A stretch of DNA of 64,000 nt from Paramoeba atlantica (lineage: Eukaryota; Protista; Discosea): assembly GCA_977017575.1 (NCBI GenBank), contig CDRNVI010000087.1, forward strand, positions 186,001-250,000, read 5' to 3'. Position numbers and translations under genes: made by a program. Under the pieces are notes generated by a model that did no database searches, was not told the origin of the DNA, and worked only from the letters and a program-made list of their open reading frames with translations. Of this stretch, positions 11,967 to 64,000 are shown in pieces (the first letter of the stretch is position 1; each line of letters starts with the position of its first letter).

Positions 11967-13117
11967 ACACCGTCAGAAGCGCAACAAAAGTTAAGAAAGT
12001 CCAAAACTGAAGTGTAACGCTAAGTTAGGAATATTCTCGTTCCGCCACAAAGATAAAACTACGTTAAAGCAATGTAAGCTTTGCATTAGTAAACAGAATT
12101 GTGTATAAAGTTTAATTACTACGAACGACTTAATGTACAGGGGGGGTATAGTAAAGTGTACCCTGTATATTAAGGGGGGGGGTATATTGGCTCACCGTTT
12201 ATACCGGGTGGGGGGTATAATGCGGGGGGGTGGGGGGTATATTTCTTCAAAATTTGCACCCCCCTATTTAATTGTCCTTTTCCCGAAAAGCGGTGACAAT
12301 TAAGTAGGGGGAGGGACAGTGCGTAAATTCTTATGTAAACAAAACTCTATGCTCAACTAAAGGGGATTCAAAATGCTTAAAAAACAGATTTTTTTTCTTC
12401 CGCAAGTACCAAAAAAATTAATCTTTCAAACTCAAAAAAATAATTTTTTGACTACTCCCCCTTTCATTTTTACTCCCCCTTTTCATAATTCTTTATAAAC
12501 CCTGTTCCGGGTTATTGTGCCCCCCCTGCACAATAACTGGCTCTAGGCACATTCTTTTTTAGGCTCTTCGTTAAACGCGGTGGTTGTTTTCAACTTAGAA
12601 GTCACACATGCTGCGCTCTTCGCATTGAAAACTACCACCGCGTTTAACGAAGAGCCAAAAAAGGAAAATTGGCCTGGAAAGCTGAAGAAAACGGAAAGAT
12701 TATAGCCGAAAATAGCCGAATTTCGGGTAAAAATGGGGTCATTTTTGGGTATTTTTGCTCTCAAGACACTAAATCCGACATTTGCGAGTGGGAAATCACT
12801 CGTAGGTATGAATGAAAGCCTACCGCACGTATTGGGTATAGAATGCGACTCCAACCACACCATTCTATCGGCACAAAAAGGCCCCTTCGGGTCCGAAAAA
12901 TACTTTTTCACCATTTTTTAGTCAAAAATGGGTCATTTTGAGGGACGCACCACGGTTCGAAGAAGGGATACCTTGTGAAAACAACGGCCGAGAAACCTAG
13001 TATAGGTCCCAAACTATCAAAATACAATAGGGGAAACGATTTTGGAAAAATATTTTTTTTGCCATTTTTTTCGCCAAGTTGAAATTTTTTTAAAAACTTT
13101 TTTATCCGAAAAAATTC

Positions 13118-16100: not shown

Positions 16101-18240
16101 CCCCCCTGGACCCCCCCCCAATAGACCCCCCGGCGCCCGCAGATTGATAATGCATATAGCACATTGATATTGCATATAGCACATTGATAATGCATATAGC
16201 ACCTCGACCTTCAGAATTTTATTTGACCTCCAGAATGTCAGTTTCCCAACGTAAAACCAAACGCCTAGACACCGAGGCCCGGGAAACTATCGCAGTGCTC
16301 TATAATCAACAAGGCTTCTCGCAAGAAGAAATAGCAGAAAAACTGGGAGAAAGCCAGGCTACTGTGAGCCGGGAGCTCAAGCGAGGCGCACGTCTCGGCG
16401 AGTACAGTGCAAAGCGTGCGCAAGGGACGAGTGAAAAAGCCATGACAAAACGCAAGGGGAAGAAGCTTAAGATTTCCGGTTCAATGCGACATAAAGTTCT
16501 CTGAACTTTAAAATCTGAACTTGGCGGACCCGTCCTGCGGATACGCGGGGGGGTCACCCCCGGGTAGGCGGGTGGAAAATGCGCGCCAAGACCCCGGCTA
16601 CTCCTTCTGCGGTTTTTTTTCGAAAACTAATTTTTTCAAAAAAATTTGCTCGACCATGACCCCCCGGGACCCCCCCCCCCCATGGACCCCCCGGCGCCCG
16701 CAGATTGATAATGCATACTAAGCGGCACATTGATAATGCATATAGCACATTGATATTGCATATAGCACATTGATAATGCATATAGCACATTGACCTTCAG
16801 AATTTTATTTGACCTCCAGAGTTTCCCAACGTAAAACCAAACGCCTAGACACCGAGGCCCGGGAAACTATCGCAGTGCTCTATAATCAACAAGGCTTCTC
16901 GCAAGAAGAAATAGCAGAAAAACTGGGAGAAAGCCAGGCTACTGTGAGCCGGGAGCTCAAGCGAGGCGCACGTCTCGGCGAGTACAGTACAAAGCGTGCG
17001 CAAGGGACGAGTGAAAAAGCCATGACAAAACGCAAGGGGAAGAAGCTTAAGATTTCCGGTTCAATGCGACATAAAGTTCTCTGAACTTTAAAATCTGAAC
17101 TTGGCGGACCCGTCCTGCGGATACGCGGGGGGGTCACCCCCGGGTAGGTGGGTGGAAAATGCGCGCCAAGACCCCGGCTACTCCTTCTGCGGTTTTTTTT
17201 CGAAAACTAATTTTTTCAAAAAAATTTGCTCGACCATGACCCCCCTGGACCCCCCCCCAATAGACCCCCCGGCGCCCGCAGATTGATAATGCATATAGCA
17301 CATTGATATTGCATATAGCACATTGATAATGCATATAGCACCTCGACCTTCAGAATTTTATTTGACCTCCAGAATGTCAGTTTCCCAACGTAAAACCAAA
17401 CGCCTAGACACCGAGGCCCGGGAAACTATCGCAGTGCTCTATAATCAACAAGGCTTCTCGCAAGAAGAAATAGCAGAAAAACTGGGAGAAAGCCAGGCTA
17501 CTGTGAGCCGGGAGCTCAAGCGAGGCGCACGTCTCGGCGAGTACAGTGCAAAGCGTGCGCAAGGGACGAGTGAAAAAGCCATGACAAAACGCAAGGGGAA
17601 GAAGCTTAAGATTTCCGGTTCAATGCGACATAAAGTTCTCTGAACTTTAAAATCTGAACTTGGCGGACCCGTCCTGCGGATACGCGGGGGGGTCACCCCC
17701 GGGTAGGCGGGTGGAAAATGCGCGCCAAGACCCCGGCTACTCCTTCTGCGGTTTTTTTTCGAAAACTAATTTTTTCAAAAAAATTTGCTCGACCATGACC
17801 CCCCGGGACCCCCCCCCCCATGGACCCCCCGGCGCCCGCAGATTGATAATGCATACTAAGCGGCACATTGATAATGCATATAGCACATTGATATTGCATA
17901 TAGCATATTGATAATGCATATAGCACATTGACCTTAAGAATTTTATTTGACCTCCAGAATGTCAGTTTCCCAACGTAAAACCAAACGCCTAGACACCGAG
18001 GCCCGGGAAACTATCGCAGTGCTCTATAATCAACAAGGCTTCTCGCAAGAAGAAATAGCAGAAAAACTGGGAGAAAGCCAGGCTACTGTGAGCCGGGAGC
18101 TCAAGCGAGGCGCACGTCTCGGCGGGTACAGTACAAAGCGTGCGCAAGGGACGAGTGAAAAAGCCATGACAAAACGCAAGGGGAAGAAGCTTAAGATTTC
18201 CGGTTCAATGCGACATAAAGTTCTCTGAACTTTAAAATCT
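13118..18240 (+). repeat. Tandem array of 9 units of 538-585 bp (element core + gcatatagcacattgataat microrepeat + IS30-type HTH fragment), with a ~1140-bp dimeric higher-order repeat
   Basis: Unit starts (gaacttggcgg) at 13118, 13698, 14236, 14816, 15376, 15958, 16517, 17097, 17656 and 18241. Confidence 0.95.
16235..16504 (+). CDS. 89-aa IS30-family transposase N-terminal HTH fragment (ATG-bearing copy; others at 17374-17643 and 17959-18228)
   Basis: GFSQEEIAEKLGESQATVSRELKRG...GEYSAKRAQ matches the IS30 HTH_38 pattern (SxREIAxxLGRSxSTISRELKRN...YxAxxAQ). No DDE domain. Confidence 0.7.
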   Translation: MSVSQRKTKRLDTEARETIAVLYNQQGFSQEEIAEKLGESQATVSRELKRGARLGEYSAKRAQGTSEKAMTKRKGKKLKISGSMRHKVL

Positions 18241-18846
18241 GAACTTGGCGGACCCGTCCTGCGGATACGCGGGGGGGTCACCCCCGGGTAGGCGGGTGGA
18301 AAATGCGCGTCAAGACCCCGGCTACCCCTTCTGCGTTTTTTTTTCGAAAACTAATTTTTTCGAAAAAATTTGCTCGACCATGACCCCCCTGGACCCCCCC
18401 CTGGACCCCCTCCTGGACCCCATTTTTTTCAATTTTTTTTTTCAATTTTGGACCACCGGTTGGAGCCCCCTTTTATATTTTTTTCATTTATTATATTACT
18501 GTGTTCCTCTTTATAGTTTCACTGTTTTTGTACCCTTTTTTTTCAATAACCGAGGGTAGAGCAGTAGTTTTACAACCACCGCAATAATCGGGGGTAGAGC
18601 GGTTTTACAACCACCGCAATGTGCTCTAACTGTTGCCTTATCAAATTTTCCGTGCATTCAAAATGTTTTTCTGACATGTTTTTACATATTGCTGCACTTT
18701 TTCGCCGTGATAGTACGCTTGTTAGTGGGGAAGAAGCGCGAGATGATCGGCTGAAGTTCGCCGGAGAAAACCCGGCGATTTAGGCCTTCTTCAAAGGGCA
18801 TATTCAAGCCCTTTTAAATATGGCCGCGCAGTGGGAGCTTTTAAAT

Positions 18847-20066: not shown

Positions 20067-20141
20067 GCCTGGCGTCGGTACCATCTGAACTACATGGCAG
20101 TGACGGGGAAGACCGCTAGTGGGTCCCGACCATGCTTCCCC
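20067..20141 (-). ncRNA. Degenerate HDV-like ribozyme copy
   Basis: RC reads GGGGAAG CAU GGUCGG GACC CACUAGC GGUC UUCCCC GU CAC UGCCAUG...GAUGGUA CCGA CG CCAGGC. P1 is intact; L3, P1.1 and P2 are mutated. Confidence 0.6.
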
Positions 20142-24495: not shown

Positions 24496-24978
24496 ATGAA
24501 ACCCGAACTCTCCCTCCAATACCTCGACGAGTGGATGCTCCGTTGGCGTCGTTTCCAAACCCGCCAGGACTGGGAAATTGAAAAAAAAGCCCAAGCCCTA
24601 CGCCAGCGGAACTACCTCCTCACCGCCCTCCTCACCCTAGCCCTCGGGGTCTACACCGCTGGGCGGGACACCGTCCACCGCTGTTTCGGCCCCCCCCACT
24701 TCTTTGACGTCGGGGTCGATGCCGCGATGAAGAGCCATCTAAAGCGATTCCTCCTCAGCCACGCCCGGTTCTGCCCCAACGGGTACGGCCGCCTCCTTGC
24801 GGTGTTCGCCCCCCCCTACGTGCTGTGGGCGACGCTGCAGCACCGCGCGGAGGTGCGGCGGTGGGGGGCGTACGTGGGGGCCGGGACGGTGTTTGGGGAG
24901 CAGGCCAGGGGGATGGAGAGGACGGGGGTGGTGGAGGAGTTTAGCGCGGTGAGGGGGGAGGGGGGGAGGGGGGAGTAG
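24496..24978 (+). CDS. ATPTB6: Likely euglenozoan mitochondrial ATP synthase subunit ATPTB6 homolog
   Basis: QYLDEWMLRWRRFQT..DWEIEK, PHFFDVGVD, P.GYGR and TVFGEQAR...G..EE match the T. brucei ATPTB6 sequence as I recall it (not searched). Confidence 0.65.
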   Translation: MKPELSLQYLDEWMLRWRRFQTRQDWEIEKKAQALRQRNYLLTALLTLALGVYTAGRDTVHRCFGPPHFFDVGVDAAMKSHLKRFLLSHARFCPNGYGRLLAVFAPPYVLWATLQHRAEVRRWGAYVGAGTVFGEQARGMERTGVVEEFSAVRGEGGRGE

Positions 24979-27900
24979 GGGGGAGTAGGGGGTAAAAGGG
25001 AGGGATAGGGGGAAGAAGAGGAAGGAAGGAATAAAGGATAGGGTAAGAATGTGGGTGTTGTGTGTGTGTGTAGATTTTATAGGAAAAACGTTTTTAAAAG
25101 GTGTCATCAAAAGGTTCGTTTAGGGTTAGGGGGGTTGGTTTGTAAGAAAAGTATCCTGTTACACAAAGAACCCTTTTTTGGCAAAATGTATTGATTGGGA
25201 AGCAAAGGGAATGAGGAGGAATTCTAGGTAAAATTGTAGATAAAACTGGATTTGCATGACACAATTGGAGATGCACCCCTATAAATGTCTTGCATTTTGT
25301 TCGATTTTGAAAATCTGTTGTCTACCACCGTTTTTCGACCCATGTATTTGTTTCGACCCATTGTATTGTGGGCGACGCTGCAGCACCGCGCGGAGGTGCG
25401 GCGGTGGGGGGCGTACGTGGGGGCCGGGACGGTGTTTGGGGAGCAGGCCAGGGGGATGGAGAGGACGGGGGTGGTGGAGGAGTTTATCGCGGTGAGGGGG
25501 GAGGGGGGGAGGGGGGAGGGGGGGTAGGGGGTAAAAAGGAGGATAGGGGGAAAAGAGGAAGGAAGGAATAAAGGATAGGGTAGGAATGTGGGTGTTGTGT
25601 GTGTGTGTGTGTGTGTAGATTTTATAGGAAAAAGGTTTCATAAAAAGGTTCGTTTAGGGTTGGGGGGGTTGGTTTGTAAGAAAAGTATCCTGTTATAAAA
25701 AGAACCCTTTTCGGTAAAATATATTGATTGGGAAGCAAAGGGAATGAGGTAGAATTCTAGGTGAAATTGTAAATAAAACTGGATTTGCATGACACAATTG
25801 GAGATGCACCCCTACAGATGTCTTGTATTTGGTTCGATTTTGAAAATCTGTTGTATACCACCGTTTTTCGACCCATGTATTTGTTTCGACCCATTGTATT
25901 GTGGGCGACGCTGCAGCACCGCGCGGAGGTGCGGCGGTGGGGGGCGTACGTGGGGGCCGGGACGGTGTTTGGGGAGCAGGCCAGGGGGATGGAGAGGACG
26001 GGGGTGGTGGATGAGTTTAGCGCGGTGAGGGGGGAGGGGGGGAGGGGGTTGTAGGGGGGTGTAGGGGGGATAGGGGGGATAGGGGGAAAAGAGGAAGGAA
26101 GGAAAAAATATAAACGATAGGGTAGGAGTGTGGGTGTTGTGTGTGTGTGTGTAGATTTTATAGGAAAAAGGTTTCATAAAAAGGTTCGTTTAGGGTTGGG
26201 GGGGTTGGTTTGTAAGAAAAGTATCCTGTTATAAAAAGAACCCTTTTTTGGCAAAATATTTTGATTGGGAAGCAAAGGGAATGAGGGAGAATTCTAGGTG
26301 AAATTGTAAATAAAACTGGATTTGCATGACACAATTGGAGATGCACCCCTACAGATGTCTTGTATTTGGTTCGATTTTGAAAATCTGTTGTCTACCACCG
26401 TTTTTCGACCCATGTATTTGTTTCGACCCATTGTATTGTGGGCGACGCTGCAGCACCGCGCGGAGGTGCGGCGGTGGGGGGCGTACGTGGGGGCCGGGAC
26501 GGTGTTTGGGGAGCAGGCCAGGGGGATGGAGAGGACGAGGGTGGTGGAGGAGTTTATCGCGGTGAGGGGGGAGGGGGGGAGGGGGTTGTAGGGGGGTGTA
26601 GGGGGGATAGGGGGGATAGGGGGAAAAGAGGAAGGAAGGAAAAAATATAAACGATAGGGTAGGTGTGTGGGTGTTGTGTGTGTGTGTGTGTGTAGATTTT
26701 ATAGGAAAAAGGTTTCATAAAAAGGTTCGTTTAGGGTTAGGGGGGTTGGTTTGTAAGAAAAGTATCCTGTTACACAAAGAACCCTTTTTTGGCAAAATGT
26801 ATTGATTGGGAAGCAAAGGGAATGAGGGGGAATTAGGTAAAATTGTAGATAAAACTGGATTTGCATGACACAATTGGAGATGCACCCCTACAGATGTCTT
26901 GTATTTTGTTCGATTTTGAAAATCTGTTGTCTACCACCGTTTTTCGACCCATGTATTTGTTTCGACCCATTGTATTGTGGGCGACGCTGCAGCACCGCGC
27001 GGAGGTGCGGCGGTGGGGGGCGTACGTGGGGGCCGGGACGGTGTTTGGGGAGCAGGCCAGGGGGATGGAGAGGACGGGGGTGGTGGATGAGTTTAGCGCG
27101 GTGAGGGGGGAGGGGGGTAGGGGGGAGTAGGGGGGAGTAGGGTGTAAAAGGGAGGGATAGGGTGAAAAGAGGAAGGAAGGAATAAACGATAGGGTAAGAA
27201 TGTGTGTGTGTGTAGATTTTATAGGAAAAAGGTTTCATAAAAAGGTTCGTGTAGGGTTAGGGCGGTTGGTGTCTAAGAAATATATCCTGTTACAAAAAGA
27301 ACCCTTTTCGGTAAAACATATTGGTTGGAAAACAAAAGGAATGAGGGGGAATTCTAGGGTAAATTGTAGATAAAACTGGATTTGCATGACATAATTGGAG
27401 AGGTACCCCCACAAATGTATGTACCCCTATAAATGTCTTGTATTTTGTTCGATTTTGAAAATCTGTTGTCTACCACCGTTTTTCGACCCATGTATTTGTT
27501 TCGACCCATTGTATTGTGGGCGACGCTGCAGCACCGCGCGGAGGTGCAGCGGTGGGGGGCGTACGTGGGGGCCGGGACGGTGTTTGGGGAGCAGGCCAGG
27601 GGGATGGAGAGGACGGGGGTGGTGGAGGAGTTTATCGCGGTGAGGGGGGAGGGAGGGAGGGGGGTGTAGGGGGGAGTAGGGGGTAAAAGGGAGGGATAGG
27701 GGGATGAAGAGGAAGGAAGGAATAAAGGATAGGGTAAGAATGTGGGTGTTGTGTGTGTGTGTGTGTGTAGATTTTATAGGAAAAAGGTTTCATAAAAAGG
27801 TTCGTTTAGGGTTAGGGGGGTTGGTTTGTAAGAAAAGTATCCCGTTATAAAAAGAACCCTTTTTTGGCAAAATATTTTGATTGGGAAGCAAAGGGAATGA

Positions 27901-28692
27901 GGGGGAATTCTAGGGTAAATTGTAGATAAAACTGGATTTGCATGACACAATTGGAGAGGTACCCCCACAAATGTATGTACCCCTATAAATGTCTTGTATT
28001 TTGTTCGATTTTGAAAATCTGTTGTCTACCACCGTTTTTCGACCCACGTATTTGTTTCGACCCATTGTATTGTGGGCGACGCTGCAGCACCGCGGGGAGG
28101 TGCGGCGGTGGGGGGCGTACGTGGGGGCCGGGACGGTGTTTGGGGAGCAGGCCAGGGGGATGGAGAGGACGGGGGTGGTGGAGGAGTTTATCGCGGTGAG
28201 GGGGGAGGGGGGGAGGGGGGAGGGGGGGAGTAGGGGGTAAAAGGGAGGGATAGGGTGAAAAGAGGAAGGAAGGAATAAAGGATAGGGTAAGAATGTGTGT
28301 GTGTGTGTGTAGATTTTATAGGAAAAAGGTTTCATAAAAAGGTTCGTTTAGGGTTAGGGGGGTTGGTGTCTAAGAAATATATCCTGTTACAAAAAGAACC
28401 CTTTTCGGTAAAACATATTGATTGGGAAACAAAGGGAATGAGGGGGAATTCTAGGTGAAATTGTAGATAAAACTGGAATTGCATGACACAATTGGAGATG
28501 CACCCCTACAGATGTCTTGTATTTTGTTCGATTTTGAAAATCTGTTGTCTACCACCGTTTTTCGACCCATGTATTTGTTTCGACCCATTGTATTGTGGGC
28601 GACGCTGCAGCACCGCGCGGAGGTGCGGCGGTGGGGGGCGTACGTGGGGGCCGGGACGGTGTTTGGGGAGCAGGCCAGGGGGATGGAGAGGA
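24824..28692 (+). repeat. Tandem array of 523-556-bp units made from the last ~155 bp of the ATPTB6-like CDS plus its downstream region (7 full units + 1 partial)
   Basis: tgtgggcgacgctgcagcac starts at 24824, 25367, 25900, 26437, 26976, 27515, 28071 and 28594. Units contain G-runs and (GT)n. Confidence 0.95.
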
Positions 28693-29118
28693 ATCTCGGG
28701 CGGCCACGCTTACAGACTTGCCGGCATCTATACTAGCACATAGGTTGTTTTTTTGCTGTATGGTAAGATCCACCCGAACCTTCCGCGGCTGCTCAGCAAG
28801 CTGGTTAGATGCATTCAATATTAATGCGGTGGATGGCGTAGCTGAAGTATCATCGGGGAAGGGCAGTACGGCAACAGTTTCGTGTGGCAACGGTGAGGAT
28901 AGAGTCACTTGGCTCGCGTTAAAGAATAGAAGTGGTGGGGCCATCGTGTATTGAATAAATATTGAAATCAATGAAAATTTACAATTTCTGACCTGGGTTA
29001 ACTATCATCACAGAGTAGGAATCGGGGGAAAATTCTGACACCCCCCTTACTTCACCACATGCGGAGTGGCTAAATGTGGTGAAGTAAGGGGGGAGGTGAA
29101 GTAAGGGGGGGGTAACGG
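28693..29118 (-). mobile_element. Truncated pogo-like element (5' TIR + N-terminal HTH_psq fragment) abutting the array
   Basis: RC ORF RKVRVDLTIQQKNNLCASIDAGKSVSVAAR is CENP-B/psq-like. Element end TA|CCGTTACCCCCC at 29118-29120. Confidence 0.55.
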
Positions 29119-34323: not shown

Positions 34324-34385
34324 GGGGAAGACCTCCTCGTGGTCCTCCCTGGCACTGCCATCTTACTGATGCTATTAACGCTGAC
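34324..34385 (+). ncRNA. Degenerate HDV-like ribozyme (J1/2-P2 5' strand deleted)
   Basis: GGGGAAG ACC UCCUCGU GGU CCUCCCU GG CAC UGCCAUC...; homologous to 58667-58739. Confidence 0.55.
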
Positions 34386-34517
34386 GTAAGAACATTCGTA
34401 GAGAAATATTTGGAAGTGTAAAGGTATTTTGACCCCCCCACTTAATTGTCATAGCCTAACCCCCCCGCTTATTTGTCCTTTTTTCGAAAAACAGGTGACA
34501 AATAAGTGGGGGGGGGG

Positions 34518-34990: not shown

Positions 34991-36514
34991 CGCCCCCCTC
35001 CCACGTCCAACAAAGAGCCCATGGACTGTTGAATTCGTTCCTCCTCGTGAGTATGTTCTTTGGCATTCTGCCGGTGGCTGTGTCCTGTAGCACCATCACC
35101 GACGATCGTCTAACGCTGGACTCCCGACCTTATCTTCCCCTCCTGACGGTAAACTGGGTGAAAAATTGGAGAATAGATAAACAATCATTTTTTTCAATGC
35201 GAAAGGGGCAGACGTTAGTTTTCACTGCGCGCCCTCGTTAGTTTTCACTGCGCGCCCTCGTTAGTTTTCACTGCGCGCCCCAGGGCTGCGCTCACAGTTG
35301 GGCCTGCCCCACTAGGTGATGAAGCATTTTTTTGTTTTTATTTTCACACACGTTGATGAATCAACGAATTAGAGACATAGCCACTTTTTTGTTTCAATAA
35401 TCGAGGGTAGAGCGGTTGTTACAACCACCGCAATAGTGCCCTATGCAGGAGTGGAGGTTTGAGGGGTGAACAAAACTTCCGTTTTTTCCCTTTCAGAAAT
35501 TTCTGTAATTATGAGAGATAACTGTTTTCATGAACTGTAAAACGTATTTTAACTATTTTTGTTCGCTTTGTATATGCGACCGTGCTACAGCCATTTTGCG
35601 GGCAGGGTGTAGAATTATTTCCTTTTCTGCGACCCAATCGCAATGGCGAGATGAGATGTATTTTATCTACAGAGCAAATGGCCACGCAAAAGGGTCGTGT
35701 TAATCTCGTGGAATAATACAACTTATTTTGACACAACTTGTTTTTTCTATAAATGATATTTTTTGTTGCCTTCGGAGACCGGTACCATTTGGGGTGTCAA
35801 ACCTCCCACACGTACTACCAAAGCGTCGAAATAATAATAAAAGCCATGTAGCACCTTATCGCCCCGTATTCATGAAATGTTATGACTTTTATGAGTTATA
35901 CTCCTATGAGTTTGTAGTTCGTTGACATCTATACCATCATAGAGACGGTAGTACAAGAAAAGTCCACGAGAAGGCTGTTGAAATACGGTGGAATACGAAT
36001 CGTATGCAACCCCGCTTTTCCCGGTATCAAATTTATGTGATTGAAAATAGCTTTTGTTTGAGTCTAAAAAGTGGTTTTTCGGCATATTTAGGTGATGCCC
36101 TACCAGGGAAAAATATGTCTGTAGTCCAAGTTGGACTACAATGCTGTTGAACCAACAGCATGTGATAAACGCGGGAGGAAGGCACAAATCCGAAAATTTG
36201 CTCATCTTGGCAGTGAAAAACATCCTGCGAAACTGTTCAAAAATTCACATCTTCAAGTAAAATAGCTCGGTTTGACAGGGGAGGAGGATCCGTGGAGTCT
36301 GCCGACCATCTTGTAAGAGTGCGAGAACTCCATTTTGGTTTAAGTGGTGGTGGTTTCATCATCAATACTCGCGTCTTGTCTAAAGACGTGTCACCCCTGA
36401 AAGAAGAACATCGAAAAGAAAAAGAAAAATCTACTAGTTAGTAAAAGAAAAATCAACCTAGTTTTTTTTAATTTTTTTTTGTCAAAGGCAGAGTGCGGTT
36501 TTTACAGAGATGCA

Positions 36515-52524: not shown

Positions 52525-53475
52525 TTGTTTCTTAATTCCTATTGCCCAGTATATTTTTGTGTGGCGTATCTATTTATTTTTACTGTCCATTTAATGGCAC
52601 TAAGTCTATGCTTTTTCGACAAAAAGGACCAGCCAAAGCGGGTCGGATTTCGGCTTAGCGATAAAGAGTCATCCGGCGCCAAAGTATTGAATGTTGATAC
52701 TGAATTTACAGAAATTCGCCCCTCGGAGACAGGCAAGATAAATCTGCCGCAAGAATTCGATCTCCTTCGAATGCTAAGCAACGTTACGAATTTAGACGAA
52801 AAAAACTGGAATGAATTCACGCCAGCCTGTGAGTGGCACCACGTAGTTTGCAATTCACATGGTGAAGTGAGTTATTTCAATGTCCGCCACTTTGGAGTGC
52901 GGGGTACCTTGCAGTGGGCATACTTGCCGCAAACACTGGAGGGCTTCTCTATGGCTGACAATGACCTGCGGGGGAGTATACCTTTGGAACATCTATCACG
53001 GGAGATGAAAGTGTTTGATGTTAGCCATAACGCCTTCAATGGTGAATTGAATTTTCCACAGCTTCCTATAACGCTGGAGAAGCTTCGGTTAGGGAGGAAC
53101 ATGTTTGAGGGTACGCTTGATTTAACGAACCTTCCTATAGGCCTTACGGAACTTCAGGCGAACAGCAACAAATTTTCCGGAAGTATCTGCCTAAGTACTT
53201 TGCCTCCACAACTTAGAATGCTTGACCTGAGTGAAAACGCTTTTACGGGCACCCCGGATTTATGTTCTTTCCCACCTTGTCTACGAAAAGTATTTTTGAA
53301 TGATAACAATTTCGATGGTTGCGCTCAATTTGATTTCCTTCATGAAAAATTGCAAGTGCTTCAGCTCTATAACAACCCTAATCTTTGTGGTCGAATAAAT
53401 ATGTCATTACTGCCCACAAAATTGAGTATCTTTTCGATTCCGCACTACGAAACGCAAATTCAACACGGATATTAG
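52525..53475 (+). CDS. Leucine-rich repeat protein (paralog of 49036-50034)
   Basis: Near-identical C-terminal two-thirds, diverged cap. Confidence 0.85.
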   Translation: MFLNSYCPVYFCVAYLFIFTVHLMALSLCFFDKKDQPKRVGFRLSDKESSGAKVLNVDTEFTEIRPSETGKINLPQEFDLLRMLSNVTNLDEKNWNEFTPACEWHHVVCNSHGEVSYFNVRHFGVRGTLQWAYLPQTLEGFSMADNDLRGSIPLEHLSREMKVFDVSHNAFNGELNFPQLPITLEKLRLGRNMFEGTLDLTNLPIGLTELQANSNKFSGSICLSTLPPQLRMLDLSENAFTGTPDLCSFPPCLRKVFLNDNNFDGCAQFDFLHEKLQVLQLYNNPNLCGRINMSLLPTKLSIFSIPHYETQIQHGY

Positions 53476-54896
53476 TTTTTCAGAGGAGACAGGAGAAGAA
53501 TAAATTGGTTTTCTAGCAAACCGCATTTTGTATTTCTCCCGGTAAAAAAACAGGCTCCAGATGCAAGCGACAGATATAAACTACAGGTACAATACACTGC
53601 CAAGGACACGATAGCGAAGAATCATAAGAGAGTAAGGTATTTTACAAAATGTTTTTTGTGCTGCTGTGCAACGAAAGTATAACACAATTAAAATATCTTT
53701 TTTGACGTAACGGTATTATTTTAACTATATTATTTTCACATGTGTTATTTGTAAGATGAATTATGTTGTTATTTTGTAAGATGAACCACGATTTTCTGGG
53801 AACCTTCAACAAACACCAGCGAGATGATGGAGTGCCCTTCGGGCTGAAGAGGGAAGTGACGGCCAACCGGCTGTCATGTGCCGTCCGGGAGATAGAGAGA
53901 GAGTACCTGATGACAAGGGACGCCCTCTACACCGAGTGGCTAGACCTCCTCTGTCAGGACGCTCGCCAGGAATACAGACACTGTCAGCTTGTCATAGACA
54001 AAGCCCACCTTTGTCAGACCTGCGGACAAGTTTTTCGTGACCAGCGCCGCCTGATCGAACACAAAGCCGTCCATGAAGTGGCCGCGGCCCGAGCGATGGT
54101 TTCCCGCCTTTCCTCTGAGCACCGGCAGGGAGCCATGATGATTGCCGAACATCAGTGGGCCTCTGCCGCCGACCTCTTCGGCCGTCTCTTTCAAGAACTC
54201 CAAAACCTATATGCTCTCCCCCCCGGCCCCTCCCCCGGCCCCACCGAAATGCAAAACTTGGAGGTGGACGAACCTCCCCCTCCCTTTGCCGCCGAATCTC
54301 CCGCCCTCACAAACACCCTAACTGACGCCCCTAGCGGGCCTTACTCATCACCCCCCAACCAGCAAGGCGGACACCAACCCCCATGTTCGACGCAACTCCC
54401 CGAAGACAGTTGGACTAGGGTCAATTTACACCTCGGACCCCACTTAGCCGGACACATCCAGGTCCCCGTCCCGGCCAGAAACCCCCTACAAGGACTCGTA
54501 CAAGCAGTAGGCTTCACTTTGGGGGTCCCCCCCGACCGCATAAGCCTAACCCACGAACCGGGAGGGTCTTACCTCGAGACCGATGAGGACCTGGCAGAGG
54601 CCGAGTGCATTTGGGCCTCTCTGCTAACCCCAAACCATGGCCCCTCCCACGGTCCCCACGTCAAAGTCTTCGACGGATCGGCAGCAGGGGCAAGTATTGA
54701 GACGCCATCGGACCTCCCAGGTGAACACATCCCCTTTTTCCTATGTCACGCCCTGGGGATAGCCCAGTGCTTCGCAGGAGCCTGGACCCCGTTCGTGTCG
54801 GAGGACGGAACGGCTTGCTGGAGCTTCACACCGACGGAGGGTCTGATAGCCGACTCGGGATGGTCGGCCGAGTTAGTCCGATGTAACCTCCGCAGA

Positions 54897-54923
54897 GGGT
54901 GCATCGAGGCCAACCCGGGACCA
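54897..54923 (+). other. 2A/StopGo-like motif GCIEANPGP
   Basis: In-frame LRRGCIEANPG|P versus the consensus GD(V/I)ExNPG|P (D replaced by C). Confidence 0.5.
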
Positions 54924-55124
54924 CGTCGCGGAAAACGGAAGAATACCTCGCCTAAATCCTCCTGCCCCGAGGACAGTAACCTCGTGAACACAACAGGACA
55001 GACGAGCCAGACGAGCACATACACCGAGGATACTCCCACCCCGCGACCAGACCTGCACAGTACAGACCCAAATTCCACATCCCAGCCTCAGGAGGGGGTC
55101 ATGCAGGACGCCTGCGTGGATAGC

Positions 55125-55625
55125 GCCGAGGCTGGCAGCCTCAGAGCGGGCCCGTATCCAAAATCCCATTGTAATGGGGGGCCCATCCTGACACCCAACA
55201 GCTCTTCATCGGGCCCTAAGTATACATCCCCTGTTCTGGGGGGGGCCATGCCGAATGCCAGCGAGGATTGCGCCGAGGCTGGCAGCCTCAGAGCGGGCCC
55301 GTATCCAAAATCCCATTGTAATGGGAGGCCCATCCTGACACCCAACAGCTCTCCATTGGGCCCTAAGCATACATCCCCTGTTCTGGGGGGGGCCATGCCG
55401 AATGCCAGCGAGGATTGCGCCGAGGCTGGCAGCCTCAGAGCGGGCCCGTATCCAAAATCCCATTGTAATGGGAGGCCCATCCTGACACCCAACAGCTCTC
55501 CATTGGGCCCTAAGCATACATCCCCTGTTCTGGGGGGGGGCCATGCCGAATGCCAGCGAGGATTGCGCCGAGGCTGGCAGCCTCAGAGCGGGCCCGTATC
55601 CAAAATCCCATTGTAATGGGGGGCC
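55125..55625 (+). repeat. 147-bp (49-aa) in-frame tandem repeat in the retrotransposon ORF, ~3.5 copies
   Basis: Unit starts at 55125, 55272, 55419 and 55567 (last period 148, which causes the frameshift). Confidence 0.9.
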
Positions 55626-58600
55626 CACCCCGCTCTCTCGCGGGACGCTGATCGAGCACATCGCGGCGGCTGCAAATGTGCCCAAAATTCCTCAGCGGAC
55701 GACAGGAGAGGGGGGGTCATTGGTGGTGGGAGGGCCGTCTTCTATCATAGGAAACCTGCAATCCACCCCGACAACCCAGGGCGCTCCAATTGAGGAACGA
55801 GGACAAGCCCCTTCCCCCGAAAACTTAGCGGAGCTCCTCGGGAGGGGGTCCTTACGTAAACTCTATGCAATCCAATGCCCGGCATGGAAGGAATACACTG
55901 CCAGCGTATGCCATGACTTCCTAAACAAGTCAGCGGAGGGCAAGGTCGAGATGGCCTGGAACCTCCTCCTTGCCGTTAAACGCTTCCTCTTCCTCCCTGA
56001 GGACAAGCTGTCGCAACGACAGCTAGCACGCGAACTCAGAATGCGTGCCCACCTAGAGGGTTCGGAGACCTTGGCTCCATCCCCGAGTCAGGCCAACGGC
56101 CCCCCATGGTCCGTCAAAAAGAGGGTGGAGGAATTATGCAGGGCGGGATGCTTCTCTAGGGCAGCCAAAACGATGGAGGCGCCCCTCAATCCACCGGCCA
56201 ACCCCACGGCTGCCCTCGAACAGGCTAAGCGCCTACACCCCACAGGTGGGCCCTACACTGCGGGGAAATTCCGCTACAATAAAGACCGGCACGGAACCCT
56301 ACCCTCCCCTGCCGATGTGGCCAGGAAGGCTCAAAGCCTGGCCCCTATCCGCGCCCCAGGACCCACGGGGTGGACCAAGGAACTTCTCATCCCAGTCCTA
56401 ATGGAGGACGGACCCCGGGACTGTGTCACGTGGATAATCCACGGGATCATGACAAACTCCCTCCCCCCCTCAATGAGGGAACTGCTCACGGGGGCGTCCT
56501 TAAAACTCTTTACGAAACCGGACGCCCCGGCGGGGCACCACTCTTCCTACAGGCCCATCGCCATGGGGGAGTGCATCCTCAAGGTGGCGGGACTCCTTGC
56601 CCTGGAGAAAATCCGGGGACACCTCCCCACATACTTTCAGGGCATCCAGTTTGGAGCCCAATATACGCAGGGGTGTGAGCACATAATATACAATGTGCGG
56701 CAACACTTTAGGGATAGGCCGAATGAGGTCATCGTGGCGGCAGACCTCGAGAATGCCTTTAATAGCATCTCAAGGTCGGCAATTTTTAGGGCGGTAAGGG
56801 GGGATCCGAAACTTCTCCCCATTGAGGGCATTACCCTCTTCAGCTACGGTACAACAAGTACCCTTCAACTTGGGGAAGGCCAATCCATCACGAGCTCAAG
56901 GGGGGTCAAGCAAGGTGACCCCATGGCTCCCATCCTATTTGCCATAGGGATCCAGGGGGCAATCGCCAGAGTGGCGGCCAACTTCACAGGCACACTGAAA
57001 GTCTGGGCGTACCTGGACGACGTCACCTTCGCTGGTGAACCTAGGGTATGCGCGGAAGCCCTAGAGGCCCTCCGCGAGGAGCTGAAACATCTTGGGCTGC
57101 GGCTAGACACCGCCAAATGTAAAGTAGCCACAAGACACAAGGACCTCTTCTCCGAGTTCTCCGGATCTCGTATGGTTCACTCCCTCGGGGGGGTCAAGCT
57201 ACTGGGGGCGTTCATCGGGGTGTCGGAGGCTAGGGAAGAAGAATGGGTGCTTTCCAAGGCCCCCAAGGTAATCTCCTTCTTGGGGAAACTTAAGGACATT
57301 AGCAGGCAATGTGCCTTGCCCCTCTTAAGACTCTGTGGGAGTCCTCGATGGAATTACATCGTAAGGACCCACGAGCCCCCGGTCACTAAAGAGGCCAATA
57401 CCCAGGTCGACAAAGCCGTCCTGGCATGTGCTGAGGCCTTGCTCGGGGGGATGGGCTCCTTGGGAAAAACGCCGTTTTCTAATAACCTCTTCACGGCAGA
57501 TTTCCTGGGGACCATCCCCTTCGAGCACAAGGCCGAAGACATGCAGGCCAAGGCGAAGAACGCTCTACAGGGCCGACCCCAAGGCATGTCAGCCAAGGAG
57601 CAGCGACGCAACCTCTGTGACGTCGCGTTGGGGAAAGCCCCGACGGCTACCCAACTGGTCTGCATGCGACAGACCCAGCGCTTTCACTCCACTAAGTGGA
57701 GGAACGCATGGCCGAACAGGCCGGAGTATTACATGCGGGACCCACAGTGGGAGACTGCGGCCCGTCTCCGGTACTTGGTCGCCCCTACCTCGGAGCCTGA
57801 GCTCCAGTGCGTGTGCGGTGCAACCCTCCGCAATGAGGATTTTTGCGTACACGCACTGGATTGCAAGAAGGTTAAGGGGAAGACCCAGGCCTCCCGCCAC
57901 AAGGAGGTCAAGGAAACCTTCCGAAACCTTCTAGTCCAGTATGGGTTCAAACCGGACTTACACGAACCGAGGTTCGACAATGGACGGGGGCCGGACTTAT
58001 GCTTCCAGCTGGGACGGAAGACCGTCCTTGTGGATGTAACGGTCGTGAACCCACTGGCCCCGTCCTACGTGGAGAAGGAGGCCGCAGAGCCTTCTCACAC
58101 CCTGAGGATGGCCGAGGCCAACAAGCGGCGCTCCCACGATGAGATGGCGACCGCCCGAGGGATGGAATTTTACCCCTTGGCTTTCACCACGTACGGGATC
58201 CCGGGCCCAGAGACTTTGAACTTCCTAACCAAGGTGGCCCGGGCCCACACATCCGACAAGAACGGATGCATGTCTCACCTCCTGATGGCCATCGGGGTGG
58301 CCATCCAGAGAGGGAACGCCCAGATTGTACAGGCGGCGGTACAAGACTGGTACCGCCGCGGGGTACGAGGTTAGCTGGGCTAGGGGGTTTAGGGAGGGAA
58401 CCAAAAAAAAAAAAAAAGGGTTCACAAGCCAGGCCGAGGAGTGGTCGAAAGACCCGGTCCGGAACGCGCGAATGGTTAGGGAGTCACCCGCACGCCGGGT
58501 GAGGTGAAGCTGAGGGAGACCTTACCCTCCCTGAGAAGTTGAAAAGTGGGGTAGGGGAAAGTAGAGAAGTAGGGAGAAAAGTGGGAAAAGTAAGTCAAAG

Positions 58601-58666
58601 GGGGAGAAAGTGAGAGAGAAAGAGGGGAAAGTGGAAAATTTTCAAAAAAAAAAAAAAAAAAAAAAA

Positions 58667-58739
58667 GGGGGAGCATGGTCGGGACCTCCTCGTGGTCTTC
58701 CCCGGCACTGCCATCTTTCAGATGGTACTGACGCCGACC
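58667..58739 (+). ncRNA. HDV-like self-cleaving ribozyme
   Basis: P1 GGGGGAG/CUUCCCC, P2 GGUCGG/CCGACC, P3 ACC/GGU, L3 UCCUCGU, P1.1 CC/GG, P4 UGCCAUC/GAUGGUA, J4/2 CUGA. Confidence 0.85.
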
Positions 58740-60266
58740 TTTAACCTAAAAGTGGGGTAGGGGAAAGTAGAGAAGTAGGGAGAAAAGTGGGAAAAGTAAG
58801 TCAAAGGGGGAGAAAGTGAGAGAGAAAGAGGGGAAAGTGGAAAATTTTCAAAAAAAAAAAAAAAAAAAAAAACCCGGTCCGGAACGCGCGAATGGTTAGG
58901 GAGTCACCCGCACGCCGGGTGAGGTGAAGCTGAGGGAGACCTTACCCTCCCTGAGAAGTTGAAAAGTGGGGTAGGGGAAAGTAGAGAAGTAGGGAGAAAA
59001 GTGGGAAAAGTAAGTCAAAGGGGGAGAAAGTGAGAGAGAAAGAGGGGAAAGTGGAAAATTTTCAAAAAAAAAAAAAAAAAAACCTCCCCGTCGGCCAGCA
59101 TCCTGTTTCGCGACCGTGTCGCTGTTGACACAGGCCCGCGCCTGCGCCCTCCCATATAGCAAGGGAAGGGTTCACAAGTCAGGCCGTGGAGTGGTCGAAA
59201 GACCCGGTCCGGAACGCGCGAATGGATTGGGTCTGTATTGCTTGTTTTAGTTTTTACTGTTTCTTGTTTGTAGTATATACTTAGGGGAGATTAAATTGCT
59301 AGTTTTGGGCTGAGAAAAAACAAAAGGTACATCTGTGGAAACAAAAAGAATTGCTAATTTGATTGCTTGTTTTCAACTCGTATACCCCCCCCAATGGACC
59401 TACTTGGTTCGTCTACTGGGTCAAAATATAGAGGCAATGCCGCGATTCATACTTAAAAAAAAAAAAAAAAAGGGGGGGGGGGCACCCCCATCAAATACAC
59501 TCCTTTTTGTCGGCATCCCCCTTCCCCGTCTCGTCCCATCACCCCCCTGCGCCGCATCCCCCCACCTCACCCTCCCTCCGCAGAGCGCTTGCCCCCCTGT
59601 TGTGTTTCTCTCTCGCGTCCACCACCCCCGTGTCAGCAGCCAAAAGTATACAATACTTGCTCACGGGGTGGGGGCAGAGTTCCTGGCAGATGGTCCCGTG
59701 CTTCGCCTCCTCTCACCCCTGCGTCAGTCGCCCCGTGTCTCTCTCCGCGCTCTTCTCCCTCGGCGTGACGACGTCTTTGTGTTTCGTGGCCTCCACGTCT
59801 CCCACCCTCGTACGGCAACCAAAAGTATTTATTACTGCTAACGGGGTGGGAGCGGAGGTGCAGGACCATACGGGCCTCGGTGCATGCGGATCGGTGAGTG
59901 GGGTAGGGAGTGAGGGAAGGGAAGTACGAGAGGGCTAAGAGGAGTAGGTGTGGAAAGTATGGGGAGTAAGGGAAAGTGAAGGGCCGTAAGTGTGGAAATT
60001 GTGGAAAAGTTGGACTCCATACATAAAAAGTTAGACTCAATACTATTCCCCCCAATTATTTGCAAAAAAAAAAAAAAAAAAAAAAAATATTCGCGGAACG
60101 CGCGAATGGATTGGGCATAAATTGCTTCTTTTTATTATTATTGTTATCAAAATCATAAATACTGTAACTTAAGGCAGGTTGAATTATTAGTTTTGGGCTA
60201 CAACATGTGAAATTGCTAATTTGATTGCTTGTTTACAAATCATATACAAAAAAAAAAAAAAAAAAA

Positions 60267-60339
60267 GGGGGAGCATGGTCGGGACCTCTTCGTGGTCTTC
60301 CCCGGCACTGCCATCTTTCAGATGGTACTGACGCCGACC
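60267..60339 (+). ncRNA. HDV-like self-cleaving ribozyme (L3 variant UCUUCGU)
   Basis: Identical to 58667-58739 except for one C>U change in L3. Confidence 0.8.
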
Positions 60340-60662
60340 TTTAACCTAAAAGTGGGGTAGGGGAAAGTAGAGAAGTAGGGAGAAAAGTGGGAAAAGTAAG
60401 TCAAAGGGGGAGAAAGTGAGAGAGAAAGAGGGGAAAGTGGAAAATTTTCAAAAAAAAAAAAAAAAAAAAAACCCGGTCCGGAACGCGCGAATGGTTAGGG
60501 AGTCACCCGCACGCCGGGTGAGGTGAAGCTGAGGGAGACCTTACCCTCCCTGAGAAGTTGAAAAGTGGGGTAGGGGAAAGTAGAGAAGTAGGGAGAAAAG
60601 TGGGAAAAGTAAGTCAAAGGGGGAGAAAGTGAGAGAGAAAGAGGGGAAAGTGGAAAAAAAAA

Positions 60663-60694
60663 AACGATAAAGATACAGTTTCTGTACCTTGTTG
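60663..60694 (+). other. Spliced-leader (mini-exon)-like sequence, 5'-truncated, not followed by the SL intron GT
   Basis: aacgataaagatACAGTTTCTGTACcttgttg carries the kinetoplastid/diplonemid SL core ACAGTTTCTGTAC and the terminal TTG. Confidence 0.7.
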
Positions 60695-63600
60695 AATTAT
60701 TTTTATTAACCCACTATTTTCCCTATCAGGGTCTCACCATGCCACACGACGACCTCTTCGATGCGAATGCAGTACCCATGGACGACGACTCTTTCCGTCA
60801 GGAAGAAATTTCGCACAACACGGGTGCTTGGGACCAATTTGCAGGAAACGCACATTTAATTCCCGGTCAGAGCTCCTACGATGAACTCTTGTACACAACA
60901 CCGATTCCCAAACATATCCCCAAACACTGGGCAAAAAGAGCCGCCAAGATCGCCGGAGAGGCTCCCACGCCGGACACGGGAAGAATGACGGAAGATGAAG
61001 AGACGAATCACTCCCTCGTCGTGGAAGCAAGCCCGAGAAACACACCGGAGGTTCCTGACGCCCAAGTACCTTCTCCAAACAAGGCCTCGAAGCGCAAGAA
61101 CATAAATCCGGTACCGATCCCGCAGCACTGTACTCAGCGCGTATGCCCAGCTGAAGGATGCACTTGGAAGACTCCTCCTCACGGTGGGCAATGGCAAGCA
61201 TTTTACAATCATGTGGCCCACCGACACGGAGAAAGCGTACCAACCACTTGGTGGGAGGGGGAGGGAAGATTTCTTTGCAAGGACTGCGGCAGGCACTACG
61301 ATAAGAACAAGGAGAATTCTCACCCCAAACAGTGCAAAGGCCGTAACCACCCCGTGCGATCTCAAACCCCACCTAGGCCAACGACAAGTCTCGAAAATGC
61401 AACTGAAATTCCTCCAGAAAACATGCTATCAACGTTGAGCTCTATCTGCGCGCTGCCCATAAGCACATGCAAAGATGTCCCCCATTCCTGTAGGTTTCTA
61501 TGGGCGAGCATTTTGACACAGGTCATGACATCTGCTGTGCAAGAAAACACAATGGAGGCATGGACGTTACTGGCAATGCTCCCTAAATGCGTCTTACCTG
61601 CACCTTACCGAGGCGGTCGCAAAGGACACACGTCATACTCTACATACGTGGAAAAAAGCATGGAACTCTGGCTAGAAGGGGAGTACCTCTTGCTCTGGGA
61701 ACAGGCCCTAAAGGATCACGCCAAAAAACGCTCCAAGCCTAGAAGTTCCGAAAATGAAGAAGAAAGAGCGGCAATCAGGGCAGAAATACTGTCACGTCAA
61801 GGGGAATACTCTAGGGGAATAGCCGCTCTAACCGCAGCACCCATGGCGCCGGACAACGAGGAGACCCTTGCGAAGCTTCTATAAAAGCACCCAAATCCTC
61901 ACGAAAACCCACTTGAGAACGATCTTCCACCGATTGAGGGTAATCCCCTGCGTCTGGAGGAAGTTTTCGCAGAGGGTCTTCTGCCGGAACAATGGGTCTA
62001 CGTCCAGAACACATCCAGGCCGCCATTTTGGAACACGCCGACAAGAAGGTGGGTCCTCTTTCGTTCCTCACTCGCCTCGTGAACCACATGCTCCAAGGAA
62101 AGGCACCGCCAGAGGTACAACTGTTCTACGCTGGAGCCCGTCTCTGCGCTCTGGAGAAAGGTGAAGAAGATGTCCGACCCATAGCAGCAGGCGAAACCCT
62201 CAGACGTCTAGTAAGCAAAGCGGCATGCGTCGCCGTAAAGGAGAAGGCTGAAACTTTATTCCGGGGAAGACAGTATGGTGTGGCTGCATCCGCGGGGGCC
62301 GAACGAGTAATTCATCTGTGCCGGAAAACAATGCTAAACAACATGGGGAGCGACAGTCTTGTTCTCTGTAAGGTAGACCTCAGAAATGCGTTCAACAACG
62401 TCAGCAGGCCTGTCTTCACTTTGCTCACACGTCTCAATTTTCCAGAACTTTCACCCTGGGTGGAATGGTGCTACACAAACCCGAGTTGTCTTACCTACGG
62501 GAATCACTTCCTATCCTCAGCCGAAGGCGTCCAGCAAGGTGACCCATTGGGTCCGCTTCTCTTCTCTCTAGTCCTTTCTGGGGTAACCGAGGAAATATCA
62601 TCCCGATCAAACCTAGATTCGCAACTATGGTATTTGGACGACGGAGTTCTCATGGGGGAGGCGGCGGAGGTTCGAAAGGCGCTTGACGTTTTTTCCGAGG
62701 TTGGTTCACAATGCGGGCTATTTCTGAATCCGAACAAGTGTGAAATAATAACGCCACCTGCCTCAGCCCATCACACGACTTTATTTCCGGAAATACCTAC
62801 CGCCAAAATTCGTGTTGACGGGAATTTCGATATTCTCGGATCCCCGATTGGGTCTGCGGAGCACTGCGCGGAGTTCCTAATGTCTCACGCCATCGAACCC
62901 GCACGCGAGACTCTCGCAGCAATAGGGCTAATAGGCGATCCACAAGTTGCCATCGCCCTCATCCGCCAGTGCACTGGCTTCTGCCAAATGGTGTACACTC
63001 TCCGCACCACACCCCCCCAGGCTCTTTTTCAACTTTGTAGCCTACTAGACGAAACCGTTCTTAAAGCTGTCGAGTGGGCACTTTTCCCCCTGGAACCCCA
63101 CGCACGTGACCAAATCCAACGAAGGAAACGCCACGGAGGTTTCGGCCTTAGGTCTGCAACACTCCACGCGACAGCCGCTTACGTTTCTTCCGTCGCGCAC
63201 GCCGCCGACATAGACGACTGGGATCCTACAGAGGCTGATGGATTCGCCATTTCGGTACAAGACGTAAACCGTAAAGCAGGAGTAGCGCTAGTGGATCCCA
63301 ACACGGGGCGCACACCCAAGCAGGACAAGCCACTCCCATACTCAGGCCACCATCACAACTTCCTCCCGAAAAGGAAACGCCCACGGAGCACTCAAAACAA
63401 AATGGAAGCGGACAGGGCAACCGCGCCGGAGATGGTCATCCCTCGACAGCAGCAACTCAGCCAGGCTATCTCACAGCAGGAATTCACCACAGCACCGAGC
63501 AGGCTGACCCTCGCACTCGCGCACGGTGGGTTTCAGAGTCGGGTAAGGGAGCAGGTAGCTGGGCTTTCGTGACGCCCTCTAGGAGCAAAGGATACGCCTT

Positions 63601-64000
63601 CACACCAACAGAGTTCCGCACGCTGTCCCGCTGGTGGCTGGGATCCGACATCTATCAAGAAGATCGCCCTTGCCCAGCGAAGGGATGCACATTACCTCTG
63701 CAGAAAAATGGGGAACATGCATTGTTATGTAAGAACGGACATGGCCTCATCACCCGTCACAACGCGGTCTGTGAGCAATTCACAGCATTCTGCAGAAAAG
63801 CCGACATAGCTCCGCAAAGGGAGAAAAGCCTGGGAAATCGTGGTCCAAGAGGGGGTCTCACCAGACCTGCTGACGTGTTTCTCCCGAATTACACCCTGGG
63901 AAGTGGTATGGTGTTAGACTTCGCAGTCACCCACGCACAGCAACTAAAGTATTTGGACTCTGTCCGGAATGCTAGCTGGGTGGCTGCGGGATCTTTCGCT
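60695..64000 (+). mobile_element. Second, different CRE-clade RLE non-LTR retrotransposon, degenerate (TAA at 61882-4, frameshifts near ~61965 and ~63490), running off the window
   Basis: N-terminal Zn fingers (CPAEGC...H...H; CKDCG), RT RPIAAGE, GVQQGDPLGP and WYLDDG, then CPAKGC...HALLC and RPADVFLP...LDFAVTH in the shifted frame. Confidence 0.9.

Follow-up and report, generated by a model that had tools for sequence, protein, structure and literature searches.

A 64,000-nt stretch of Paramoeba atlantica DNA (hereafter the window; contig CDRNVI010000087.1, positions 186,001-250,000, forward strand, assembly GCA_977017575.1) harbors a family of HDV-like ribozymes. The copy at 58667-58739 is probably active and appears to belong to a dispersed module of about 75-85 nt, one RNA of which would have been captured by a CRE-type reverse transcriptase (RT); we give this reading a rough probability of 0.55. 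This copy heads unit B, a 206-nt chimera made up of the 73-nt ribozyme, 8 further nt, the last 102 nt of an A-type CRE-type 3' UTR, and A23. Unit B is a recent fusion with an intact fold and sharp module boundaries.

Six ribozyme copies were found in the window, two intact, one near-intact, and three decayed. Five were recovered by BLAST, in agreement with the count of the initial annotation, which had overlooked a sixth, decayed copy found with a covariance model (36021-35920; E about 3e-6, a rough value). Copies are referred to below by the coordinate of their 5' end.

58667-58739, forward strand: HDV-like ribozyme with intact fold, predicted cut directly 5' of G58667.
60267-60339, forward strand: second intact copy, with C22U and a P1.1 of one C-G and one U.G pair, in the duplicated block 60248-60657.
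43618-43690, reverse strand: near-intact solo copy, with G1.U, C21A, one P4 mismatch, and J4/2 CUAA.
20067-20141, reverse strand: decayed solo copy, with U20C, mismatches in P2 (two) and P4 (one), and an A-U pair in P1.1 that is compensated.
34324-34386, forward strand: dead solo copy, lacking 10 nt (J1/2 and the P2 5' strand) and with U in place of the catalytic C (C75U).
35920-36021, reverse strand: sixth, old copy, with C75U, a 29-nt insertion before P3, and fully paired P1 and P4.

The HDV-like descriptor consists of a nested double pseudoknot in which P1, P1.1, P2, P3, and P4 follow each other in HDV order (PMC6326823), and the hallmark of L3 is U20, C24, and G25 with a trans U.G pair (PMC3386971, PMC6326823). 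G1 is expected to pair with a pyrimidine at the base of a P1 of 6-7 bp. The initial annotation had proposed such a fold for 58667, and the complete double pseudoknot can indeed be drawn, with all five helices, L3 UCCUCGU, and the catalytic C of J4/2. More specifically, P1 comprises 7 bp, starts with G, and contains one G.U; J1/2 is CAU; P2 has 6 bp, with one further pair possible if a G is bulged; P3 has 3 bp (ACC/GGU); P1.1 consists of two C-G pairs; P4 has 7 bp; and J4/2 reads CUGA. Every descriptor feature is present, including the L3 U.G pair, and 0 of 20,000 dinucleotide-shuffled versions of this 73-mer passed the same descriptor. The background amounted to 8 descriptor matches in 400 block-shuffled windows and, with a looser descriptor, 3 in 100.

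The key residues recur among the copies. All five helices are found at 58667 and 60267, and P1.1 of copy 43690 is a single pair. G1 pairs with a pyrimidine at the foot of P1, as G1-C in the two intact copies and as G1.U in 43690. L3 reads UCCUCGU, UCUUCGU, and UACUCGC in the three good copies, and the U20/C24/G25 feature is lost in 20141. The catalytic C and the conserved A of J4/2 are retained as CUGA or CUAA in the three good copies, and two copies (34324 and the sixth, 36021) carry C75U. The second base of J4/2 is U, as in the antigenomic HDV ribozyme, and differs from the R of the CRRA descriptor (PMC6326823). Furthermore, a core of 13 nt (ACCTCCTCGTGGT) is identical to a primer for the catalytic region of Drosophila R2 (PMC3414825); because active-site sequences of such ribozymes are reported to converge (PMC3774820), this identity is no proof of descent.

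Comparison with covariance models, which the initial annotation had suggested as a check, returned the expected family at low scores: HDV_ribozyme (RF00094) was the top family for both 58667 and 43690, at 17.1 and 15.8 bits, far under the gathering score of 50. An Rfam scan of the entire window gave no ribozyme match, and local scans gave HDV below threshold only. In non-pseudoknot folding in context, the pairing probability of P1 reached only 0.13-0.45 for the two train copies, and thermodynamic z-scores ranged from -0.9 to -2.6, values that are uninformative since the folding program handles no pseudoknots. Structure and conserved catalytic residues together support the assignment of 58667 as a further member of the HDV-like class, a class that is itself already known. 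On this structural model, the intact copies are predicted, with high confidence, to self-cleave.

Covariation backs the helices in a suggestive way only. Four double-sided changes were found, a C-G to A-U exchange in P1.1 of 20141 and, in the sixth copy, two P1 pairs changed from G-C to A-U and one P2 pair from C-G to U-A; they come from few sequences, all lie in decayed copies beside pair-breaking changes, and part of them could be accounted for by AT-ward drift. In the five-copy alignment, 88.5% of cells in helices are paired and 12 of 500 shuffles reach the covariation score, which is inflated because two of the three double-sided changes in it stem from the misaligned 34324 row. The three substitutions cited in the initial annotation (P1 position 5, P1 position 1, and P4) exist, each of them single-sided. 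Its statement that the changes keep pairing across five copies holds for these three and is otherwise overstated: pairs are broken in 43690, where C21A costs one P1.1 pair and one P4 pair is also lost, as well as in 20141 and 34324.

The boundaries of the module are sharp. Likeness among the copies stops no more than 3 nt before G1 and 8 nt past P2; in two solo copies CAT precedes G1, and the poly(A)-joined copy begins exactly at G1. The flanks of the solo copies hold no common body, poly(A), or target-site duplication, and CRE sequence is absent on both sides. With no target-site duplication found, RNA-mediated spread of the solo copies is conjectural. The element that contains copy 43690 (43506-44587) is flanked by TA and has terminal inverted repeats of 29 nt, and copy 20141 adjoins sequence 77% identical to subterminal repeats of Merlin transposons. 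The Merlin elements of loci L011 and L012 carry no ribozyme, and the placement of solo copies in or by MITE-like DNA may perhaps be due to chance, the genome being MITE-rich. The TA-flanked element is itself split by a second hairpin-ended repeat (43976-44429) and lies directly after an LRR ORF.

DDE transposases, including the Merlin/IS1595 type, and Helitron-like sequences were observed at L011 7055-8242 and L012 8060-9292, 1-1080, and 3972-4979, in contrast to trypanosomatids, which are reported to have retrotransposons only (PMC12278014). The window also contains two tandem arrays whose units measure about 540-580 bp (12552-18628, composed of MITE-end sequence, and 24500-28700) and two segmental duplications (1335-5237/36125-40059, 94%; 49106-50234/52568-53676, 83%, containing an LRR gene). 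Matches to GGGGGGTCATGGTCG in 560-bp tandem repeats were set aside as MITE sequence, not ribozyme. Exact-pattern scans of JGI metagenomes and IMG/VR returned nothing but one chance match without the fold. Searches for a tRNA head or tRNA genes, for proteins recurring on many contigs, and for related RT loci on viral contigs found none.

The 58667 ribozyme lies in a train of about 2.3 kb between two elements that encode an RT and a restriction-like endonuclease.

53763-58417, forward strand: family 1, the upstream RT and restriction-like endonuclease element, with two ORFs and a 5' end without ribozyme.
58418-60664, forward strand: train of poly(A)-tailed units, of which A, C, D, F, and C' are 5'-truncated CRE-type 3' UTRs, E belongs to another repeat family, and B and B' are the ribozyme units.
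58644-58666, forward strand: the A23 at the end of unit A, the preceding unit, directly abutting G1.
58740-58747, forward strand: 8-nt linker after P2, with which the captured RNA probably ended.
58748-58872, forward strand: purine-rich 102-nt tail plus A23, the tail being 100% identical to 58542-58643 and 58962-59063.
60665-63572, forward strand: family 2, the downstream CRE-like element, opening with the spliced-leader exon relic 60665-60691.

Traits of the CRE clade are an RT with a C-terminal restriction-like endonuclease, poly(A), internal repeats, and spliced-leader-linked ends (PMC12278014). The neighboring elements share this anatomy, with RVT_1, zinc-knuckle and PD..D motifs in the translations, internal repeats, poly(A), and spliced-leader relics at junctions, and are assigned on this anatomy as putative CRE-clade members. 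The family-1 element has 147-bp internal repeats, a 3' UTR of its own of 28 nt, and A15. Its ORF1 shows a 2A-like EANPGP motif, and the 147-bp tandem repeats differ in number among copies (L002, L003) (54855-54923, 55077-55630). Junctions between elements repeatedly show a spliced-leader motif of kinetoplastid type, which would fit insertion into the spliced-leader exon as in SLACS and CZAR (PMC5814959, PMC12278014). Relics were located at 60665-60691, L003 12837, L008 3787, 9898, and 14895, L012 12815, and L013 2878. Because each lies where the poly(A) of one element gives way to the next element, the relics can be read both as the head of family 2 and as the target site of the upstream insertion.

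Most units of the train are copies, truncated at the 5' end, of the structured 3' UTR found after the family-2 stop codon. A conserved structured module recurs in many family-2 3' UTRs (59083-59231, 58418-58481; L011 5366-5514; L012 12395-12545; four copies in L009); it was assessed as a possible ribozyme and dismissed, the 59083-59231 module giving neither an Rfam nor an HDV descriptor match. Four to five near-identical CRE copies lie head to tail in L009 1-14925, a contig whose name is marked circular.

In unit B, a 5' ribozyme is joined to a CRE-type 3' end with poly(A), the anatomy of a SIDE or hybrid SIDE. The tail is 100% identical to adjacent CRE-type 3' UTR units, and the fusion is therefore recent. 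Two copies of the unit exist, both in one duplicated block at one locus, and the loci sampled outside the window cover a small part of the genome. The block spans about 410 bp and comprises B and the next unit; apart from differences in A-tracts and at the 3' end, its two versions differ by a single substitution. The duplicate at 60267 has a 3' end 9 nt shorter and a different unit upstream, whose A19 tail precedes it in place of unit A. The duplication may have arisen from a re-copied read-through RNA.

The initial annotation placed G1 as the first non-A base after the tract at both 58667 and 60267, which we confirmed; the solo copies fix the register. The two flush copies count as one, because both lie in the one duplicated block, and 60267 provides no second flush junction because a switch inside the A-tract or an exchange of DNA would look identical; any template switch within the tract is concealed by it. 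Each of the nine A-tracts of the train directly precedes a new unit (9/9), and the other units begin at scattered points of the CRE 3' UTR, spread over more than 200 nt, as expected of 5'-truncated RNAs joined end to end. From this scatter, the chance of a unit landing on G1 after poly(A) by coincidence is of the order of 1 in 100, a rough figure for one event. It is plausible that self-cleavage produced the ribozyme 5' end at this single independent junction.

The 3' ends of the train units also vary. Just past the window end, at L004 13575-13850, a last A-type unit enters unique DNA without poly(A), after 9 extra bases with which units A, B, B', and C also finish; these four units may have been copied from read-through RNA of that locus. 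Two further train units stop 9 nt sooner. Positions 53000-64000 of the window are matched at 99.9% identity by locus L004 of ENA assembly ERZ24900291. Housekeeping proteins encoded in this assembly have their best structural matches among Euglenozoa: eS19 with 6ZJ3, and UDP-glucose pyrophosphorylase with 3GUE and 2OEF, entries from Euglena, Trypanosoma, and Leishmania. Of the 13 bases after P2 (58740-58752), 10 agree with the first bases of the spliced-leader relic, probably by chance.

These features can be combined into the following account. A transcript running through an intact copy would cut itself immediately before G1, C75 serving as general acid together with Mg2+, and would thereby release a compact 5'-OH RNA, the 3' end of which would then be trimmed to a few bases past P2. 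During target-primed reverse transcription, a CRE-type RT would start at the poly(A) of a CRE 3' UTR RNA, copy the final 102 nt of that UTR, jump to the 3' end of the ribozyme RNA, run off at G1, and jump to the poly(A) of the next RNA. The product would be unit B, whose anatomy is visible in the sequence, as is its later duplication as one block with its neighbor. We infer self-cleavage before G1 (from known chemistry), a stable product of about 80 nt, and capture by end-to-end template jumping. The account is supported by the double-sided changes that the older copies show in P1, P1.1, and P2, and both template jumps by R2-type RTs and hybrids of a ribozyme plus 5 to 8 nt are documented (PMC3414825). 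Against it stand the single independent flush junction, the low pairing probability of P1 in non-pseudoknot folding, the missing target-site duplications of the solo copies, and the presence of unit B in one train only; no parent element of the ribozyme was found in the window or in the 222 kb sampled outside it.

More tentatively, the ribozyme could be a self-standing mobile unit that founds a new parasite, or the head of a CRE subfamily. As a mobile unit, its nuclease-resistant product of about 80 nt would be captured repeatedly by RTs and inserted as solo copies, some of them carried by DNA-transposon MITEs, and unit B would be a ribozyme-headed, CRE-tailed non-autonomous element in the course of being founded. 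As a subfamily, CRE elements would have replaced their spliced-leader head with the ribozyme.

The capture account has to be weighed against four other explanations. It is unlikely, though conceivable, that the A-type 3' UTR belongs to an unsampled CRE subfamily with the ribozyme as its genuine 5' hallmark, unit B being a short, internally deleted derivative. SIDEs of R2 arise by such internal deletion (PMC3414825), and an autonomous element owning the A-type tail is absent from all sampled loci. Twelve other loci from the same assembly (222 kb, more than 20 RT-bearing copies), picked for CRE RT genes, were screened with BLAST, a relaxed descriptor, and the covariance model; none of the three approaches detected a ribozyme copy there. 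None of the 11 sampled family-2 5' ends carries a ribozyme: seven show the spliced-leader relic (window, L003, three in L008, L012, L013), and four tandem copies in L009 open with the last bases of the relic, which is trimmed. The family-1 5' end in the window likewise lacks a ribozyme, and solo copies stand without CRE flanks. An association with CRE elements as a 5' hallmark, in the sense of R2 or L1Tc, is thus not borne out in these samples; the link to CRE at this locus is instead the fusion to a CRE-type 3' tail within a train of 3' fragments.

Less probable still, the flush junction could be incidental, the outcome of random 5' truncation or of DNA exchange in the A-tract, with a real fold and no self-cleavage. 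All train units begin directly after an A-tract, the flush copies form one block, and solo copies lie in or beside DNA-transposon-derived sequence, from which it follows that DNA-level spread occurs. The widely scattered starts of the other units argue against a chance landing on G1, and the poly(A) tail of unit B points to an RNA step.

That the sequence is an inactive look-alike or a decayed, non-cleaving relic appears quite improbable. Three of the six copies are clearly broken, the RF00094 scores fall well short of gathering, and the covariation rests on few sequences, a score that some shuffles also reach; yet the youngest copy retains every invariant residue, and RF00094, built on viral sequences with longer P4, is nevertheless top-scoring for both copies. 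Finally, it is very unlikely that poly(A) and ribozyme are maintained in order to form the 3' end of the upstream CRE transcript, with templated poly(A) and a cyclic phosphate: HDV-like cleavage would free an upstream RNA ending in A23 and the family-1 3' UTR is very short, but four other family-1 copies (L001, L002, L003, L005) have no downstream ribozyme, and unit A separates the ORF from the ribozyme, the arrangement being perhaps a local side effect and not a conserved one.

Small stable RNAs joined 5' of a retroelement 3' fragment by template jumping are familiar from U6-L1 chimeras. The template jumps of R2 to U12 snRNA and tRNA yield the same order of parts (PMC3414825). Unit B differs from these chimeras in that the RNA captured would be a ribozyme and might allow the chimera to release itself.

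An HDV-like fold on its own is to be expected, because it is already known in ingi-clade and R2-type elements. The 5' ribozymes of R2 and R4/Dong share with 58667 the fold, the active-site residues, and an adjoining RT and restriction-like endonuclease element, but they head autonomous elements (PMC3774820), whereas the autonomous elements here start with a spliced-leader relic. Pr77/L1TcRz (L1Tc, ingi, NARTc, RIME, SIDER) is likewise a compact HDV-like ribozyme of 70-80 nt in euglenozoan mobile DNA that cuts 5' of +1 and occurs in scattered, partly decayed copies; it heads APE-type LINEs and derivatives with a body and poly(A) (PMC4035085, PMC5814959), while the solo copies here share no body, and the sampled loci contain no APE-type element. 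The antigenomic HDV ribozyme resembles 58667 in its 7-nt L3, the ACC/GGU P3, the U after the catalytic C, and a bulged base at the foot of P2 (RF00094; PMC3386971). It differs from the copy described here, which has no viral context, a short P4, and a score far below Rfam gathering.

The closest counterparts are the R2/R1 hybrid SIDEs of Drosophila, in which a ribozyme plus a few bases (5-8 there, 8 here) is followed by the 3' end of another non-LTR element (PMC3414825). The Drosophila families are old, have many copies at one fixed rDNA site with a 14-bp duplication, and their ribozyme donor is known (PMC3414825), in contrast to unit B, whose CRE-type tail is 100% identical to its neighbors and which occurs in one train only. 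By this analogy, the 58667 ribozyme works here like a hybrid-SIDE head, whereas the sampled loci support neither an established SIDE family nor a CRE hallmark. In the literature covered, we found no link of HDV-like ribozymes to CRE elements or MITEs, which is weak evidence that such a link is new, given that most subscription papers lie outside that coverage.

Unit B may resemble an R2/R1 hybrid SIDE in the making, with a self-freeing head and a tail that the CRE protein may recognize. The solo copies in MITE-like DNA hint at how ribozymes pass between unrelated classes of elements. If the capture account is true, this recent chimera of a ribozyme and a foreign tail would be a snapshot of the birth of a hybrid SIDE, a process that could previously only be inferred from old families (PMC3414825).
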